DNA of 64,000 bases from the sequence record PQ015378.1, one strand, 5' to 3'. Below the pieces are notes generated by a model. That model saw only the letters and a list, made by a program, of their open reading frames with translations, did not search any database and was not told where the DNA came from. Every line of letters starts with the position of its first letter. The stretch's first letter is position 1. Below, piece by piece: positions 37,960 through 52,313 of the stretch. Both the position numbers and the translations under genes were made by a program.

Positions 37960-38291
37960 TCGACATCCCAACCAATGCGGAACGCATCGCTCACAAATAT
38001 GAGCGCGAACTCGAAGTCGTCAGTGGTGGCTTGAACAACGCCATTAAGAACGATACCCTGCAGTCCAACTACAAAGATCACCGCTGGGTATCGTTTTATC
38101 TGCATGGGGATAACCGTCAACTGGACATCAGCGATGAGTTCTTTGACCATATCTCCAAGCTGTACCTCAAAGCAGGTTGGTTCCTGGAACGGCGTTATGG
38201 CGAAGAGACCACCGAAGATGAAGGTAAGCTCATTGCTATCGATTGCTTCGTTGCAAGTAAAAGCTCGGTCGATGCGGCCAACGCAGAATAA
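37953..38291 (+). CDS. hypothetical protein
   Basis: GAGGG RBS. Confidence 0.7.
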   Translation: MVIDIPTNAERIAHKYERELEVVSGGLNNAIKNDTLQSNYKDHRWVSFYLHGDNRQLDISDEFFDHISKLYLKAGWFLERRYGEETTEDEGKLIAIDCFVASKSSVDAANAE

Positions 38292-44582: not shown

Positions 44583-45848
44583 TTATCCCTTCACGCAGAG
44601 GACTTGTTTGAGAGTGTGGACGATGTCGACCAGTTCAGCCTGAGCTGCCATCACGTCATCGATGTTCTTGTAGGCCTTTGGAGTTTCGTCCAGTACGCCT
44701 TCATCCTTACGGCACTCGATACCTGCAGTGTCACGGATATGATCTTCCAGAGTGAAGGTACGCTCTGCCGCCTTACGGGACATGATACGACCTGCGCCGT
44801 GGGAGCACGAGCAGAAGGACTCACGGTTACCCTTACCACGCACGATGAACGACTTGGCACCCATCGACCCAGGGATGATCCCCAACGTACCTTCATGAGC
44901 CGCTACGGCGCCCTTACGGGTAACCAGTACGTTCTCACCGAAGTGACGTTCTTCGGACACGTAGTTGTGGTGACAGTTGATCGCTTCCATGTCGGTATCG
45001 ATCGGGAGACCCAGAGTGCGGTGGATGGCATCCAGGGTAGCATGCATCATCACGGTACGGTTCAGCGCTGCGAAGCGTTGGGCCCAGGTTACTGCTTCCA
45101 GGTAATCGTTGTAGTACTTCGATCCCTGAGGTAGATAAGCCAGGTCTTGGTCAGGCAGGTTGATAAAGAAGCGACGCATCTCTTCTTTAGCCATGTTGAT
45201 GAAATAAGTCCCGATAGCGTTACCGATACCACGTGAACCAGAGTGGAGCATTACCCACACACGTTGTTCTTCGTCCAGACAGAGTTCAACGAAGTGGTTG
45301 CCTGTCCCAAGAGTACCGATGTGATTCCAGGCACGGTTTGCGGCTTTGCCGAGTTTCGGGTGGCGAGCAACGATCTGGTCCAGATGCACGCGGAGCTTGG
45401 TAGCTTCATCACGAACTGCTTTGACTGGATGATCGAAGACTTTCACCGAACCCCATGCACCGCGGTCCATTGGACCACCGTTATCCGTACGACCATGCGG
45501 TACGGCCGCTTCGATAGCTGCGCGTACGTGCCCCAGGGAATCCGGCAGGTCTTCTGCGCGGGCGTTCAGACGATACGCAGCCATACCACAACCCAGATCA
45601 ACACCTACGGCGGCTGGGATGATCGCACCGACAGTGGAGATCACCGAACCGATGGTTGCACCTTTACCGACGTGAACGTCAGGCATTACTGCCAGGTGGG
45701 ACTTGATGAATGGCAGGGCAGCCAGGTTCTTCAGCTGTTTGATTGCGTCTGGTTCGACTGGTACGCCGACGGTCCAGGCTTTGATCGGCTTGGAACCTTG
45801 TTCTGGTTCACCACCGAGAATTTCGAAAGTGCGTTTCACTTGTTTCAT
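44583..45848 (-). CDS. rtcB: RtcB RNA ligase (3'-phosphate/2',3'-cyclic phosphate to 5'-OH)
   Basis: MPDVH, GVDLGCG, GTLGTGNHF, HSGSRG, HHNY, RKGA, PGSMG, SHGAGR, DETPKAYK motifs. Confidence 0.96.
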   Translation of the reverse strand: MKQVKRTFEILGGEPEQGSKPIKAWTVGVPVEPDAIKQLKNLAALPFIKSHLAVMPDVHVGKGATIGSVISTVGAIIPAAVGVDLGCGMAAYRLNARAEDLPDSLGHVRAAIEAAVPHGRTDNGGPMDRGAWGSVKVFDHPVKAVRDEATKLRVHLDQIVARHPKLGKAANRAWNHIGTLGTGNHFVELCLDEEQRVWVMLHSGSRGIGNAIGTYFINMAKEEMRRFFINLPDQDLAYLPQGSKYYNDYLEAVTWAQRFAALNRTVMMHATLDAIHRTLGLPIDTDMEAINCHHNYVSEERHFGENVLVTRKGAVAAHEGTLGIIPGSMGAKSFIVRGKGNRESFCSCSHGAGRIMSRKAAERTFTLEDHIRDTAGIECRKDEGVLDETPKAYKNIDDVMAAQAELVDIVHTLKQVLCVKG

Positions 45849-45875: not shown

Positions 45876-46217
45876 TTAAGCGCGTTTTACAAAACCGAAA
45901 CTGAGCACGTAACGTGTGCCTTTAGTCACGGTAGTTACACTGTGTGTTGCGATGTCTGGTCGGAACAGAGTAAAGAACCGATTGCTGATGATTACTTCAT
46001 CATGCTCCGGGACACCACCAGCTTTCGCATTCCACAGGTAGATGTTCAGACGGTAGTGTCGATGGTTTGGCGCAGGATCACGATGTCGTGGAATACCTGA
46101 ACCTACGGGATAACGCAGCAGGTACAGATCCCACTTAAACCGACTGAAGAACTTCCAACGATTCAGAAGCTCTAACTTTTCATAGCCGGTACCTTGACGG
46201 CCAGCTTCCCATTTCAT
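45876..46217 (-). CDS. minimal 2OG-Fe(II) oxygenase
   Basis: LLRYPVGSGIPRHRD (HxD), THSV (distal His), TRYVLS (2OG-binding Arg). Confidence 0.8.
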   Translation of the reverse strand: MKWEAGRQGTGYEKLELLNRWKFFSRFKWDLYLLRYPVGSGIPRHRDPAPNHRHYRLNIYLWNAKAGGVPEHDEVIISNRFFTLFRPDIATHSVTTVTKGTRYVLSFGFVKRA

Positions 46218-47179: not shown

Positions 47180-47503
47180 TCAGGACCGACCCTTTAACTG
47201 CATGAAACGATGTAGATTCAGTAGAGCTTCAGTATCTACGCTTCCACGATCAACCATCTCCATTAACTGGGTGATGGTGACTTCCTCTGGTTCCCACTGA
47301 TCTTCCAAGCCGTAGCAGGAACAGTGAGATCCATGTACTTCGAAATACTTGCCATCCTTGTAGTACAGCACGTAAGAACTACCGGAGTAGTCCTCGTAAG
47401 TGTAGTCTGCATGGATAACATGAGCTCCGTCGAGATCGTTGGCCGCGTTTCCACGGTAGTTGCTGATTACATCGGACACATCAGAAAAATCGTTGTAAAA
47501 CAT
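47180..47503 (-). CDS. conserved-looking acidic phage protein (GSHCSCYG motif)
   Basis: YEDYSGSSYVLY...GSHCSCYGLEDQWEPEE; own promoter at 47573-47600. Confidence 0.7.
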   Translation of the reverse strand: MFYNDFSDVSDVISNYRGNAANDLDGAHVIHADYTYEDYSGSSYVLYYKDGKYFEVHGSHCSCYGLEDQWEPEEVTITQLMEMVDRGSVDTEALLNLHRFMQLKGRS

Positions 47504-47572
47504 TTTGGTGATTCCATTGACAAGGCGAGATTGCCCGCTGCATTCTCTTTTAATAGTCAATGGTCAGTCCTG

Positions 47573-47600
47573 TATACTGTATCGCCACCAGTATTTTATT
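47573..47600 (-). promoter_or_regulatory. middle-type promoter
   Basis: AATAAAATACT-N8-TACAGTATA. Confidence 0.7.
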
Positions 47601-47602
47601 AC

Positions 47603-47632
47603 GGCATAGAGCCTCCCGAAGGGAGGCTCTAT
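47603..47632 (-). terminator. hairpin terminator closing the ncRNA cassette
   Basis: ATAGAGCCTCCC-TTCG-GGAGGCTCTAT. Confidence 0.8.
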
Positions 47633-47886
47633 TAATAGTGTTATGCATGCCTTTCAAGGTCGGCCAACTACACCCCCAGAAACCAGAGGTCATGTTCAGC
47701 ATGCCGCCGCAGCGCTAATCAATTCAGAATCGTCCCGATGCGAATCCGCACCATCTGGGGACGACCTCAAAAGAAGAGCTAACCACGTTCCGATCGTGCG
47801 CCGAGTCAAGGCTGGCACGAACTGTGGTATAGAGATTGACAGTCTCTGTTATATGTCGCTCTACGAAACCACTAAGCGTAGGCCTT
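47633..47886 (-). ncRNA. stand-alone ~250-nt structured RNA with a tRNA-Asp anticodon-loop mimic
   Basis: own promoter and terminator; no - strand ORF of 60 aa or more; many helices including AGAGA-CTGTCAA-TCTCT. Confidence 0.65.
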
Positions 47887-47887
47887 A

Positions 47888-47917
47888 CATACTATCATGA
47901 TGACAGTAATTTATTTC
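47888..47917 (-). promoter_or_regulatory. middle-type promoter overlapping the radical SAM gene stop
   Basis: GAAATAAATTACT-N8-GATAGTATG. Confidence 0.75.
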
Positions 47918-48804
47918 AGGAACGTTCCACAGCTAGCTTGAACGTCAGTGCCCACGCGTGGGATCACTTTCACCCGAGCGTCGGGCAAACGAGAACGGAT
48001 GTATCCAGCCAGGTATTGGATATGTCCTTCAACCGGTTCTTTCGAGTAATGTCCCACTGGTGGGTTGTAACGAACGATGTTCCAGTTGACATCGACAGCG
48101 TATTCCTTGATCGCATCAACAACACGCTTTACATCACCCAGGGAATCATTCTCCCCGTCAATGAATGCGTAATGGATCTTTGGCTTCTTACCAGTAGCTT
48201 GCTGCCATTCGAACAACTTATCCAAACCAGCTTCCGGGTTCAGGGCTTTAGGGAGCCACCGTTTGCGGAACTTTGGATTCATGCTGTAGATTGAGTAATA
48301 GATCTCTGGGTACACTGCGGGGTTCTTGAAGATCTGGTAGAACTCGATGCCCGTTACCTCATGTGGAATGATCGTCGATATCAGGAACTTGTATTCCAGT
48401 CCGTGTGACATCGCTAGGTCAGCGAGGCGTTCCAGTACTTCGTCTGCGTTGTCCAAGAAGATCTTATTAGCCAGTGGCTCGCCACGGGCCATGAAGTTGA
48501 AGTGAACCATCTTCGCAGGGACGCCACCTTTACGACATTGCTCAGCGTAGTACTGCATGACTTGTCCAGCTTGTTGTAGATATTCGTCAACGGTAACATC
48601 ACGTGCTTTGTTCTGACCTGTGGCAGTCAGCCAACACATCCGGCATGCTTTCTCGCAACCGGTCTGTGAAGACAGGTAAATGATGAAGTAATCGTCAACC
48701 CGGCGAACGAAACGTGCCTCGATCATCCCGTCGTCTACACGACATTCGAAGTTAACTGATTGGTCGAGTTGGGAATGATGCTCTTTGAAGATTAGTTGCG
48801 ACAT
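47911..48804 (-). CDS. RlmN/Cfr-like radical SAM protein
   Basis: SSQTGCEKACRMC (CxxxCxxC), MARGEPL, NIVRYN, GTDVQASCG (counterpart of RlmN GxDIxAACG). Confidence 0.85.
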   Translation of the reverse strand: MSQLIFKEHHSQLDQSVNFECRVDDGMIEARFVRRVDDYFIIYLSSQTGCEKACRMCWLTATGQNKARDVTVDEYLQQAGQVMQYYAEQCRKGGVPAKMVHFNFMARGEPLANKIFLDNADEVLERLADLAMSHGLEYKFLISTIIPHEVTGIEFYQIFKNPAVYPEIYYSIYSMNPKFRKRWLPKALNPEAGLDKLFEWQQATGKKPKIHYAFIDGENDSLGDVKRVVDAIKEYAVDVNWNIVRYNPPVGHYSKEPVEGHIQYLAGYIRSRLPDARVKVIPRVGTDVQASCGTFLK

Positions 48805-48864: not shown

Positions 48865-48940
48865 TGGTGCCGCCAACAAGGATCGAACTCGTGACCTTCT
48901 CATTACAAGTGAGCTGCTCTACCGACTGAGCTATAGCGGC
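48865..48940 (-). tRNA. tRNA-Thr(TGT)
   Basis: 76-nt cloverleaf, loop CTTGTAA, encoded CCA. Confidence 0.95.
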
Positions 48941-49028
48941 TGGAGCTGAGAGCTGGATTCGAACCAGCGCGTGCGTTTGAGCAAAAGGATTTGCAATCCC
49001 CTACATTCGTCCACTCTGCCATCTCAGC
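48941..49028 (-). tRNA. tRNA-Cys(GCA) with long variable arm
   Basis: 88 nt; loop TTGCAAA, U73 discriminator, CCA; variable hairpin TGC-TCAAAC-GCA. Confidence 0.85.
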
Positions 49029-49036
49029 GAATATAA

Positions 49037-49110
49037 AGGAACAGGATCGTCCAGGGTAGCTACACCCCCAACCCACTTGTGACCGAAACTAACTCGGACA
49101 ACCTGTTCCT
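49037..49110 (-). ncRNA. structured spacer RNA within the tRNA operon
   Basis: AGGAACAGG-TTGTCC ... GGACGA-T-CCTGTTCCT closing helix with internal hairpins. Confidence 0.45.
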
Positions 49111-49115
49111 ATGTT

Positions 49116-49203
<88 letters not shown>

Positions 49204-49209
49204 TGAAAT

Positions 49210-49295
49210 TGGTGGGGATGGAGGGACTCGAACCCACACGGTCTAAGACCGCTGGAACCTAAATCCAGTGCGTCTACCAATTTCGCCACATCCCC
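49210..49295 (-). tRNA. tRNA-Leu(TAG)
   Basis: class II cloverleaf, loop TTTAGGT, CCA. Confidence 0.95.
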
Positions 49296-51461: not shown

Positions 51462-51464
51462 AAT

Positions 51465-52310
51465 GTCGGTCCAACTTCCAGGATTGAAGGCCCCAGTCTC
51501 CCGTAGATCATCGTGGGGATAGATCGCGGTTGGATCGCTTTTCATCCTAGTCTGTAGCAACCCCTGACGGCTTTCGCTAGAGGGGAAACCCGGAGACTAG
51601 GTCTATCTATCTAACTCACCTCTAAGCAGCTTCAGGATGCGATGGAGGGTAAGTATTCAGGAATAGGTGCATATCAGGCAACCCCACCGGGTACGCCCAT
51701 ATGCGCGTGGGAAACGCCCTTCCCAATTGGAGCTATGACCACCCGAAGGCTCACTGCTAAGCATGGCCCAGGAGTCCCTTTACGGGGGATGACCTGGGGG
51801 AGCTTCACGTGACGGGACTGTCACCTTCTATGGCGCTGTATTCCAGCAGCTTCACGTAAGCCCAGTGACGGAATCTACTAATCCGTTGTAGCCACCTTAT
51901 CTCGCTTCGGTGGTAATGCGCGTGTCTTAAACCGGGATCATCCAAGACGCTTTAGACAATTGCTCAGGGTACGGGACTCGCCTTCCCATGCTAGTCGCTG
52001 GCTATGATCATTCCAGCAACCGTCGTAGGGTTCGATAGTCTCGTTAGCATGCAGGCTTTGCCCTAGGTAGTTGGGACATCGCTAACGAACTTGCCCACGC
52101 TTTTGATCGCGAGGGACTCTCCACCGCTAGCTGCGATGGGTTTGTAAGAGGTTGATGGAACGATCCTCTACCGTCATCTATTCGGACTCCGGCGACCTTT
52201 TCAGCGCAGTGGGGTGGAGTGCACTTACCCAACACCCTGCCATGGCTCTTACGAACTAGGTTGCCCAAGGCGGGTTAGGCCAGGGGACTTGCAGACCTAA
52301 GTCTGTATGG
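51465..52310 (-). ncRNA. giant (~850 nt) structured non-coding RNA, GOLLD/ROOL-like context
   Basis: no credible ORF; more than 15 helices read by eye; co-transcribed between tRNA-Ser and tRNA-Leu. Confidence 0.75.
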
Positions 52311-52313
52311 AAC

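Follow-up and report, generated by a model that had tools for sequence, protein, structure and literature searches.

A structured non-coding RNA family beside the tRNA islands of 201phi2-1-like Pseudomonas jumbo phages, with a probable internal loop-loop contact

ROOL and GOLLD are phage-encoded RNAs of about 580-800 nucleotides (nt) or more that lie beside tRNA islands, fold into pseudoknotted multi-helix structures and have no known partner or function. GOLLD and OLE assemble via self-complementary loop sequences, and ROOL and GOLLD via kissing and palindromic loops (PMC12286853). Here we analyze a 64,000-nt stretch of sequence record PQ015378.1 (the window), which belongs to the 302.5 kb genome of the Pseudomonas jumbo phage RVTF4, a relative of jumbo phage 201phi2-1; coordinates are unchanged. 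A 350-nt gap without annotation in this window carries a gene for a structured non-coding RNA (minus strand, approximately 47602..47888, starting just past the promoter's TATG and running through the terminator hairpin). By analogy, the closest known RNAs in kind are ROOL and GOLLD, which share with it the phage origin, the position beside tRNA islands, the pseudoknotted multi-helix fold and the lack of a known partner or function. In contrast to ROOL and GOLLD, this RNA is about 240 nt long, occurs in a single Pseudomonas jumbo-phage lineage and matches neither model. The YrlA RNA (RF02553), encoded with rsr and rtcB, is likewise non-coding and lies near an RtcB gene in an RNA-repair context, but the RNA described here matches neither RF02553 nor RF00019 and lacks the T/D module and the long terminal Ro-binding stem. 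No Ro60/Rsr (TROVE) gene is annotated in RVTF4 between 42 and 58 kb, the 16 kb around the RNA. The aptamer of purine riboswitches is held together by a loop-loop kiss, and its two side-by-side hairpins with invariant complementary loops and a conserved junction recall this RNA, as a lead only. Unlike a riboswitch, this RNA has its own promoter and terminator, a further promoter downstream and an extra domain of about 130 nt, with no ligand or regulated gene evident. The best explanation for the findings below is a stand-alone structured RNA of a new family that may be compacted by a kiss between two of its hairpin loops, L2 and L3, and may act in trans as a scaffold or partner within a tRNA and RNA-repair island. 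We give this combined reading an even chance of being correct.

The RNA is non-coding and does not belong to a described family. The surrounding region is entirely transcribed leftwards, and the coordinates of all features refer to the minus strand unless stated otherwise. The RNA stretch folds better than shuffled sequences (z = -4.08) and no open reading frame (ORF) is conserved across ten homologues. Stop-free stretches of 44-70 codons are present on the sense strand and vary in frame, position and length. ARAGORN identified 10 tRNAs in the window, none of them at the RNA locus, and an Rfam search of the window at gathering thresholds returned tRNAs only. A permissive Rfam scan of positions 47300-48100 yielded only chance-level matches to the terminator hairpin, with no match of the tRNA model at E ≤ 10. 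Similarly, permissive scans of eight homologous loci (E ≤ 5-10) found no match on the RNA, including the tRNA, YrlA and ROOL/GOLLD models; weak YrlA matches in relatives fall on genuine tRNA genes. These results bear out the original prediction, made from the window sequence, that a discrete structured RNA is encoded on the minus strand. Judged by sequence comparison, the family is real, previously undescribed and without a relative in Rfam. Resemblances to hammerhead, hepatitis delta virus (HDV), group I and RNase P RNAs noticed by eye had no Rfam match, and a CsrA/RsmA sponge was ruled out, the GGA motifs not being conserved.

Homologues of the RNA are found in a narrow group of jumbo phages and always close to the same gene. 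A BLASTn search ('distant') with the RNA against 50,697 phage records returned only RVTF4 itself, and homologues were therefore sought through the neighboring gene, which encodes a radical SAM protein similar to RlmN and Cfr. Relatives of this protein were identified in 30 phage records and in IMG/VR contigs. In phages D6 and Psa21 and in several IMG/VR contigs the radical SAM gene is followed by a gap of 320-390 nt with recognizably related sequence, whereas in 201phi2-1, Phabio, Viktualia and others another gene abuts it and no gap is present. A first, loose DNA pattern gave chance matches only in IMG/VR, and none of 100 such loci (L015-L114) matched the covariance model described below. A strict pattern of shared motifs found eight stretches in IMG/VR, every one in a jumbo-phage contig, and four true stretches representing three different RNAs in a metagenome collection, together with 17 chance matches without P2 complementarity. 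The IMG/VR scan covers the genomes of 201phi2-1 and Phabio and revealed no copy elsewhere in either. Among 185,579 bacterial and archaeal genomes the strict pattern matched 16 times, and none of these matches fits the RNA model. In total, ten distinct RNAs were identified, all in related jumbo-phage contigs. Eight of them were reached independently through the neighboring protein and are thus unbiased for the motifs, while L143 and L144 were found through the motif pattern only. By sequence the RNAs fall into group A (RVTF4 and its nearest relative, L144), group B (D6, L132 and L143) and group C (Psa21, L003, L134, L002 and L008). Each of the ten RNAs follows the radical SAM gene, with an intervening 229-amino-acid ORF in L144. 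Across the sequences searched, the family occurs only in a single group of Pseudomonas jumbo phages related to 201phi2-1 and in no cellular genome.

Covariation strongly supports a conserved 5' domain predicted to consist of three helices (P1, P2 and P3), with the P1 loop forming a pseudoknot with the segment that follows P2. MAFFT alignments leave P1 and P3 unaligned, failing on covarying stems, and a covariance model of the 5' domain was therefore built from three equal-length homologues with the structure read by eye (model R1), to which the other RNAs were aligned. Model R1 recovers all ten RNAs with E-values between 1e-29 and 0.03. It has no other match in related loci (291 kb), unrelated viral contigs (881 kb) or chance pattern matches (208 kb). 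In the model-guided alignment, which is itself fitted to the structure, 91.2% of positions in the 23 pairs of the four helices are paired, compared with 62.2% in shuffled sequences and 32-42% with slid partners, and 17 of the 23 pairs show double changes. In the MAFFT alignment alone, P2 pairs in 100% of cases, the pseudoknot pair is CG in seven RNAs and UA in three, and none of 500 shuffles reaches an equal score. P1 (47861..47881) is formed by CTACG (47877-47881) and CGTAG (47861-47865) around the 11-nt loop L1, CTTAGTGGTTT (47866-47876); 49 of 50 cells pair, against 23 in permutations, and all 6 pairs are doubly changed in the model-guided alignment. GUGGU within L1 (47868..47872) forms the 5' strand of the pseudoknot and ACCAC (47824..47828), located directly after P2 and containing an invariant CC, its 3' strand. 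The middle pyrimidine-purine pair of this helix is U-A in three RNAs and C-G in seven, with no mismatch. P2 (47831..47847, AGAGA/TCTCT) encloses the 7-nt loop L2, CUGUCAA (47836-47842), and consists of exactly 5 base pairs (bp) and a 7-nt loop in all ten homologues; 50 of 50 cells pair and all five pairs are doubly changed, which shows that this hairpin, proposed in the original prediction, is real. P3 (47794..47820) has the strands TCGTGC-CA-GCC and GGC-GCACGA around loop L3, UUGACUC (47803-47809), and its distal stem covaries. Permutation tests back P1, P2 and P3. G-U pairs are found on the sense strand only and therefore fit an RNA.

The same comparison redraws several elements of the fold first proposed. 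A terminal helix had been suggested between CTACGC and GTGTAG. In L144, CTACG is replaced by ACATG together with a change of the local CGTAG to CATGT, while GGTGTAGTTGGCC is unchanged; CTACG and CGTAG consequently form hairpin P1. The D-arm-like pairing GCTT...GAGC is not conserved, and its AGTGG sits in the pseudoknotted P1 loop. For the long arm capped by TTGACTC, the inner part holds as P3, and the outer pairings ACCAC/GTGGT and GTTC/GAAC are missing in L144.

The anticodon-like loop L2 has a complementary partner within the RNA. L2 reads C-N-GUCAA in all ten homologues, so that in tRNA numbering C32, the GUC triplet, A37 and A38 are invariant. These features, together with the 5-bp stem, the 7-nt loop and the C/A combination at positions 32 and 38, resemble a tRNA-Asp anticodon arm, and the loop differs at one position from that of the phage's own tRNA-Asp (CUGUCAC). 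However, the proposed mimicry does not extend to position 33, which is U in seven RNAs, C in two and A in one (Psa21), nor to position 38, which is A in all ten in place of the C of the phage tRNA-Asp. In addition, this RNA lacks acceptor, D and T arms; the predicted tRNA-like body is contradicted by the negative ARAGORN and Rfam tRNA searches and by the covariation that refutes its acceptor and D elements. A resemblance to one anticodon loop or another comes with any 7-nt loop of the pattern Y-U-NNN-R-N. L3 carries an invariant UGAC complementary to the GUCA of L2, and Watson-Crick complementarity between the two loops spans 4-6 nt in all ten RNAs (GUCAA with UUGAC in RVTF4). In every homologue 22-25 nt separate P2 from UGAC, though the sequence of P3 varies freely. 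P2 (5 bp) and the pseudoknot helix (4-6 bp) together approximate the length of P3, so that the two loops could meet side by side. This complementarity explains the conservation of GUCA without mimicry, and an internal contact with L3 appears likelier than a tRNA mimic.

The 3' domain is more variable and its helices are predicted with less uniformity. P5 is tentative in RVTF4, where CGUGGU (47782..47787) would pair with GCUGCG (47708..47713), the latter within a conserved GYGGYG motif; in the other groups, P5 appears as GUCGU:GCGGC with the covarying forms AUCGU:GCGGU and GUCAU:GUGGC. It encloses P4, a variable arm (47729..47765) formed by GUCGUCCC and GGGACGAU around a small apical hairpin, with a local equivalent GUCCU/AGGAC in L144 and details that differ between groups. 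The remainder of the domain is closed by Py (47645..47704; GCAUGC at 47699-47704 and GCAUGC at 47645-47650), which encloses hairpin Px (CCUCUG at 47684-47689 and UGGGGG at 47673-47678). Py and Px each show covariation, both in the comparison of RVTF4 with L144 and among the members of group C; for Px, CCTCTG/TGGGGG in RVTF4 corresponds to CCACTG/CGGTGG in L144. The interleaved pairings GAGGTC/GACCTC and CCCCAGA/TCTGGGG, put forward earlier as a pseudoknot, are missing in L144 and are replaced by the covarying local hairpins Px and P4. A GGCC-centered self-complementary segment, UUGGCCGA (47660-47667), likewise enclosed by Py, is only suggestive. Group B (D6, L132 and L143) differs in its 3' domain, which has a covarying hairpin of its own.

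The RNA is flanked by a phage promoter motif and a terminator. The motif TTACT-N13-TATG at 47888..47909 (family consensus AAATAAAATACT-N8-TAATAGTATAC) sits downstream of the radical SAM stop codon, ahead of the RNA, and a tRNA-type promoter motif occupies this position in all ten homologues. The general form A(A/T)TACT-N13-TAT(A/G) is likewise found ahead of tRNA clusters (56499, 52525 and 49321) and of the next gene (47594), so that the RNA shares its promoter type with phage tRNA genes; the motif recurs in relatives, in D6 ahead of the tRNA-Ser/Cys/Thr cluster. A search for sigma-70 promoters at the RNA locus found none. The prediction of a promoter and terminator of its own thus holds, with a phage-type promoter in place of a sigma-70 promoter. 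The terminator (47602..47632) is a 12-bp hairpin with a UUCG loop followed by UAUGCCG, belongs to a generic type (hairpin plus CUUUAUGCCG) present in 10 copies in the window, and its stem covaries in homologues. The same class of terminator motif occurs in 201phi2-1 and phiKZ, and tRNA-Leu of 201phi2-1 is transcribed from a 'middle' promoter (PMC11512511). A second promoter motif is located past the terminator, in relatives as well as in the window, and makes the downstream gene independent of read-through, in contrast to a riboswitch or leader. The ends of the RNA are inferred from these motifs; they give a length of roughly 240-285 nt, with a core of about 240 nt without the terminator. The promoter motif was additionally observed on the plus strand at 38291 and 63775, and the best promoter matches drive tRNA clusters.

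The RNA lies between a tRNA island and genes linked to RNA modification and repair, and no single neighbor is coupled to it in both directions. Directly upstream is the radical SAM gene (47911..48804, 297 amino acids), preceded by a tRNA cluster for Leu, Ser, Cys and Thr (48865-49295, ARAGORN); in the window and in relatives, tRNA clusters are located 0.3-1.5 kb upstream of the RNA. An RtcB RNA ligase gene (44583..45848) is found 1.7 kb downstream, as it is in D6 and Psa21. A functional link of the RNA to either enzyme is only putative. Over its length the radical SAM protein aligns to the RlmN and Cfr models, with scores far under the cut-offs (TIGR00048, E = 2e-16, 59.8 bits versus 290), and also matches solved Cfr and RlmN structures, with about 75 N-terminal residues of RlmN missing. 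The family retains the CX3CX2C cluster motif (C50/C54/C57) and the methyl-carrying Cys292. The resolving cysteine of RlmN, C118, corresponds to an invariant Tyr43 in homologues from Pseudomonas, Caulobacter and Brevundimonas phages (including L010-L014, L165, L166 and L167), while the distant homologue Tunturi_5 keeps the cysteine. In the C118A variant of RlmN the enzyme is covalently trapped on RNA (PMC5130265), and the chemistry of the Tyr43 family, as read from its residues, may be altered. Tyr43 is nevertheless not a specific argument for an enzyme-RNA pair because it is also present in phages without the RNA.

The predicted co-occurrence of RNA and enzyme holds in one direction only. The RNA adjoins the radical SAM gene in ten of ten cases, but 19 of 27 IMG/VR loci have the enzyme and no RNA, as do 201phi2-1, Phabio and Viktualia and Caulobacter and Brevundimonas phages. 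In the enzyme tree, which is poorly resolved, RNA-bearing and RNA-free enzymes are intermixed and presence of the RNA does not define one clade; the resolution is too poor to separate one gain from several losses. Distant radical SAM homologues showed no RNA downstream, and the sole gap of 348 nt among them (L183) looks coding and has no tRNA or Rfam match. RtcB is common in jumbo phages without such an RNA, and the RtcB neighborhoods of Viktualia, RP12, PA1C and RAY contain neither a gap nor a model match. The small gene downstream of the RNA (47180-47560), whose product has about 106 amino acids, is widespread in unrelated phages and is therefore not a specific partner. This one-way coupling to the enzyme, together with the occurrence of RtcB and the 106-amino-acid gene without the RNA, indicates that the RNA is a lineage-specific addition to the island with no obligate single partner.

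Three alternative explanations take the anticodon-like loop at face value. The RNA could be a dedicated substrate or partner of the adjacent enzyme, with P2 and L2 mimicking the anticodon arm of tRNA-Asp and being methylated or captured at the A37-like adenine. Its constant position directly after the enzyme gene, the fixed dimensions of P2 and L2 with invariant C32, G34, U35, C36, A37 and A38, a loop one position away from that of the phage tRNA-Asp and an enzyme that, like the trapped C118A variant of RlmN (PMC5130265), lacks the resolving cysteine all point in this direction. Against it stand the U, C or A at position 33, the failure of the acceptor-like and D-like elements to covary, the ARAGORN, Rfam tRNA and YrlA searches that miss the RNA, the Tyr43 enzymes of 201phi2-1, Phabio, Viktualia, IMG/VR contigs and Caulobacter and Brevundimonas phages that have no such RNA, the mixing of RNA-bearing and RNA-free enzymes on the tree, and the internal partner UGAC of the L2 GUCA. 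The invariant A38 is a further obstacle: E. coli RlmN no longer methylates tRNA-Gln with a U38A change, does not accept an isolated 17-nt anticodon stem-loop and reads the whole L-shape of the tRNA (PMC5130265). The RNA has neither the pyrimidine 38 nor the tRNA body on which the E. coli enzyme depends, a dependence that may not hold for the divergent phage enzyme. Overall, the structural part of the original prediction is confirmed in part and its interpretation partly supported, and the tRNA-mimic and RlmN-partner reading is disfavored; we consider it unlikely, with a small chance of being correct. A more far-reaching version, in which the enzyme without its resolving cysteine would not be released after radical addition to the A37-like adenine of L2, leaving a natural covalent RNA-protein particle, seems very improbable. 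Alternatively, the loop might act as a decoy or sensor that draws a host anticodon nuclease of the kind cutting tRNAs with GUN anticodons, with RtcB carrying out repair. RtcB is encoded 1.7 kb downstream in RVTF4, D6 and Psa21, the phage has its own tRNA-Asp and tRNA-Asn (ARAGORN), and the loop presents Y-G-U in nine of ten RNAs. However, RtcB is encoded in many jumbo phages that lack such an RNA in its vicinity, position 33 is A in Psa21, no nuclease is known from these hosts, and a single stem-loop held inside a fold of 240 nt, where it probably pairs with L3, would make a poor decoy, which leaves this function only a slight chance.

Other explanations concern the RNA as a whole. Self-assembly into a homodimer or oligomer, through the GGCC segment, an intermolecular L2:L3 kiss or both, is compatible with the favored fold. 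A GGCC-centered stretch is present at the same place in seven of ten RNAs with different flanks (UUGGCCGA, AGCUGGCCAGCU, AGGCCGGCCU, UGGCCGGCCA and GGCCGGCC). As argued for OLE and GOLLD (PMC12286853), a palindrome without a loop is unable to pair within one chain, and ROOL and GOLLD are likewise phage RNAs often found near tRNA islands; the comparison with their assembly loops provides a hint of self-association. Yet a shuffled sequence contains about 7 palindromes of at least 8 nt when G-U pairs are allowed, so that such palindromes are frequent by chance and their number is not significant. The GGCC element is also missing from the three homologues of group B and overlaps helix Py at the 3' edge, and the RNA is much smaller than ROOL or GOLLD. 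Self-assembly therefore keeps a minor but appreciable share of our confidence. The sequence could also be a cis element: as a 3' untranslated region (UTR) it would stabilize the mRNA of the radical SAM gene, or as a leader or riboswitch it would govern read-through into the genes that follow. The RNA comes after the radical SAM stop codon without an intervening terminator, and a conserved 5' domain followed by a variable 3' part and a terminator recalls the layout of an aptamer with its expression platform. This reading has little chance in view of the tRNA-type promoter motif between stop codon and RNA in all ten homologues, the second promoter past the terminator that serves the downstream gene, the generic terminator for which no alternative pairing with the RNA body was seen, and the 229-amino-acid ORF that separates the radical SAM gene from the RNA in L144. 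Finally, the locus might not encode an RNA at all and instead be a small protein-coding gene or a DNA-level protein-binding site, as the 44-70-codon stop-free stretches and the inverted DNA repeat GTCAA/TTGAC could suggest. The open frames are inconsistent between homologues in frame, position and length. Four helices are maintained by compensatory changes, each G-U pair would be an A-C mismatch on the opposite strand, and we give this view next to no credence.

The preferred reading is a stand-alone RNA that functions in trans. The RNA would be expressed like the phage tRNAs from the same promoter motif and end at the generic terminator. The P2 loop (C-N-GUCAA) would kiss the UGAC of the P3 loop, producing a compact core in place of a free anticodon mimic. 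The folded RNA may then serve as scaffold or partner for a protein of the tRNA, RNA-modification and RNA-repair island, which is the weakest step. Several observations weigh against this reading. Only ten sequences from one phage lineage are available and their relatedness inflates the shuffle statistics. The kiss is beyond proof by covariation because GUCA and UGAC are both invariant, and the probability of chance complementarity between two conserved loop 4-mers, about 2-3% by our own estimate, is not negligible. As compared here, the 3' domain is not the same across the groups. The ends rest on motifs, and read-through from the radical SAM gene could yield the RNA as a 3' UTR. Lastly, no protein partner is singled out, as the radical SAM, RtcB and 106-amino-acid genes all occur widely without the RNA.

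Nucleus-forming jumbo phages have been studied intensively, and almost nothing is known of their structured RNAs. This family adds a compact RNA, some 240 nt long, that combines a pseudoknot with a probable kiss and is located between a tRNA island, an unusual radical SAM enzyme and RtcB. Its small size suits chemical probing and cryo-EM, and the isolated phages RVTF4, D6 and Psa21 carry it. Its partner, once found, could show how these phages manage modification and repair of tRNA and other RNA. If self-assembly were true, the RNA would be a small relative in kind of the ROOL and GOLLD cages, and if the covalent particle were true, it would be the natural counterpart of a state known in RlmN only as a trapped mutant intermediate. 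The narrow distribution of the family limits the claim.

The surroundings of the RNA show a number of additional features. The downstream gene at 47180-47560 is annotated as 'integrase', a label that is probably wrong: its product of about 106 amino acids begins with MFYNDFSD, contains the motif HGSHCSCYG and belongs to a family of unknown function found in 131 records of unrelated phages. The 5' UTR of this gene (approximately 47505-47555) forms a long-range hairpin, CCATTGAC...GTCAATGG, that ends just before the start codon. A hairpin occupies the same place in D6, L132 and L144, and the group C members L002, L003 and L008 have TTCAAGC...GCTTGAA instead. The words GTCAA and TTGAC in this hairpin echo the L2 and L3 loops, possibly by coincidence. 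Adjoining RtcB is a 113-amino-acid ORF (45876-46217) that weakly resembles the 2OG-Fe(II) oxygenase superfamily (PF13640, E = 2.5e-4, under the cut-off), for which an AlkB-like role in RNA or DNA repair would suit the neighborhood. Within the tRNA island, an unannotated 851-nt gap between tRNA-Leu(UAA) and tRNA-Ser(GCU) (51462-52313) contains no ORF longer than 74 amino acids. Positions 51765-51893 are about 72% identical to positions 1831-1960 of L003, which match positions 330-384 of the Rfam bacterial 23S rRNA model (40 bits, E = 9e-9). In the window itself the gap gives only a chance-level group II intron match, and it may hold a second non-coding RNA. The phage tRNA-Cys(GCA) at 48941-49028 is 88 nt long with the discriminator U73 and has a long variable arm as in Ser and Leu tRNAs. 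D6 encodes a similar tRNA-Cys of 84 nt, and such a class-II-shaped tRNA-Cys is unusual.

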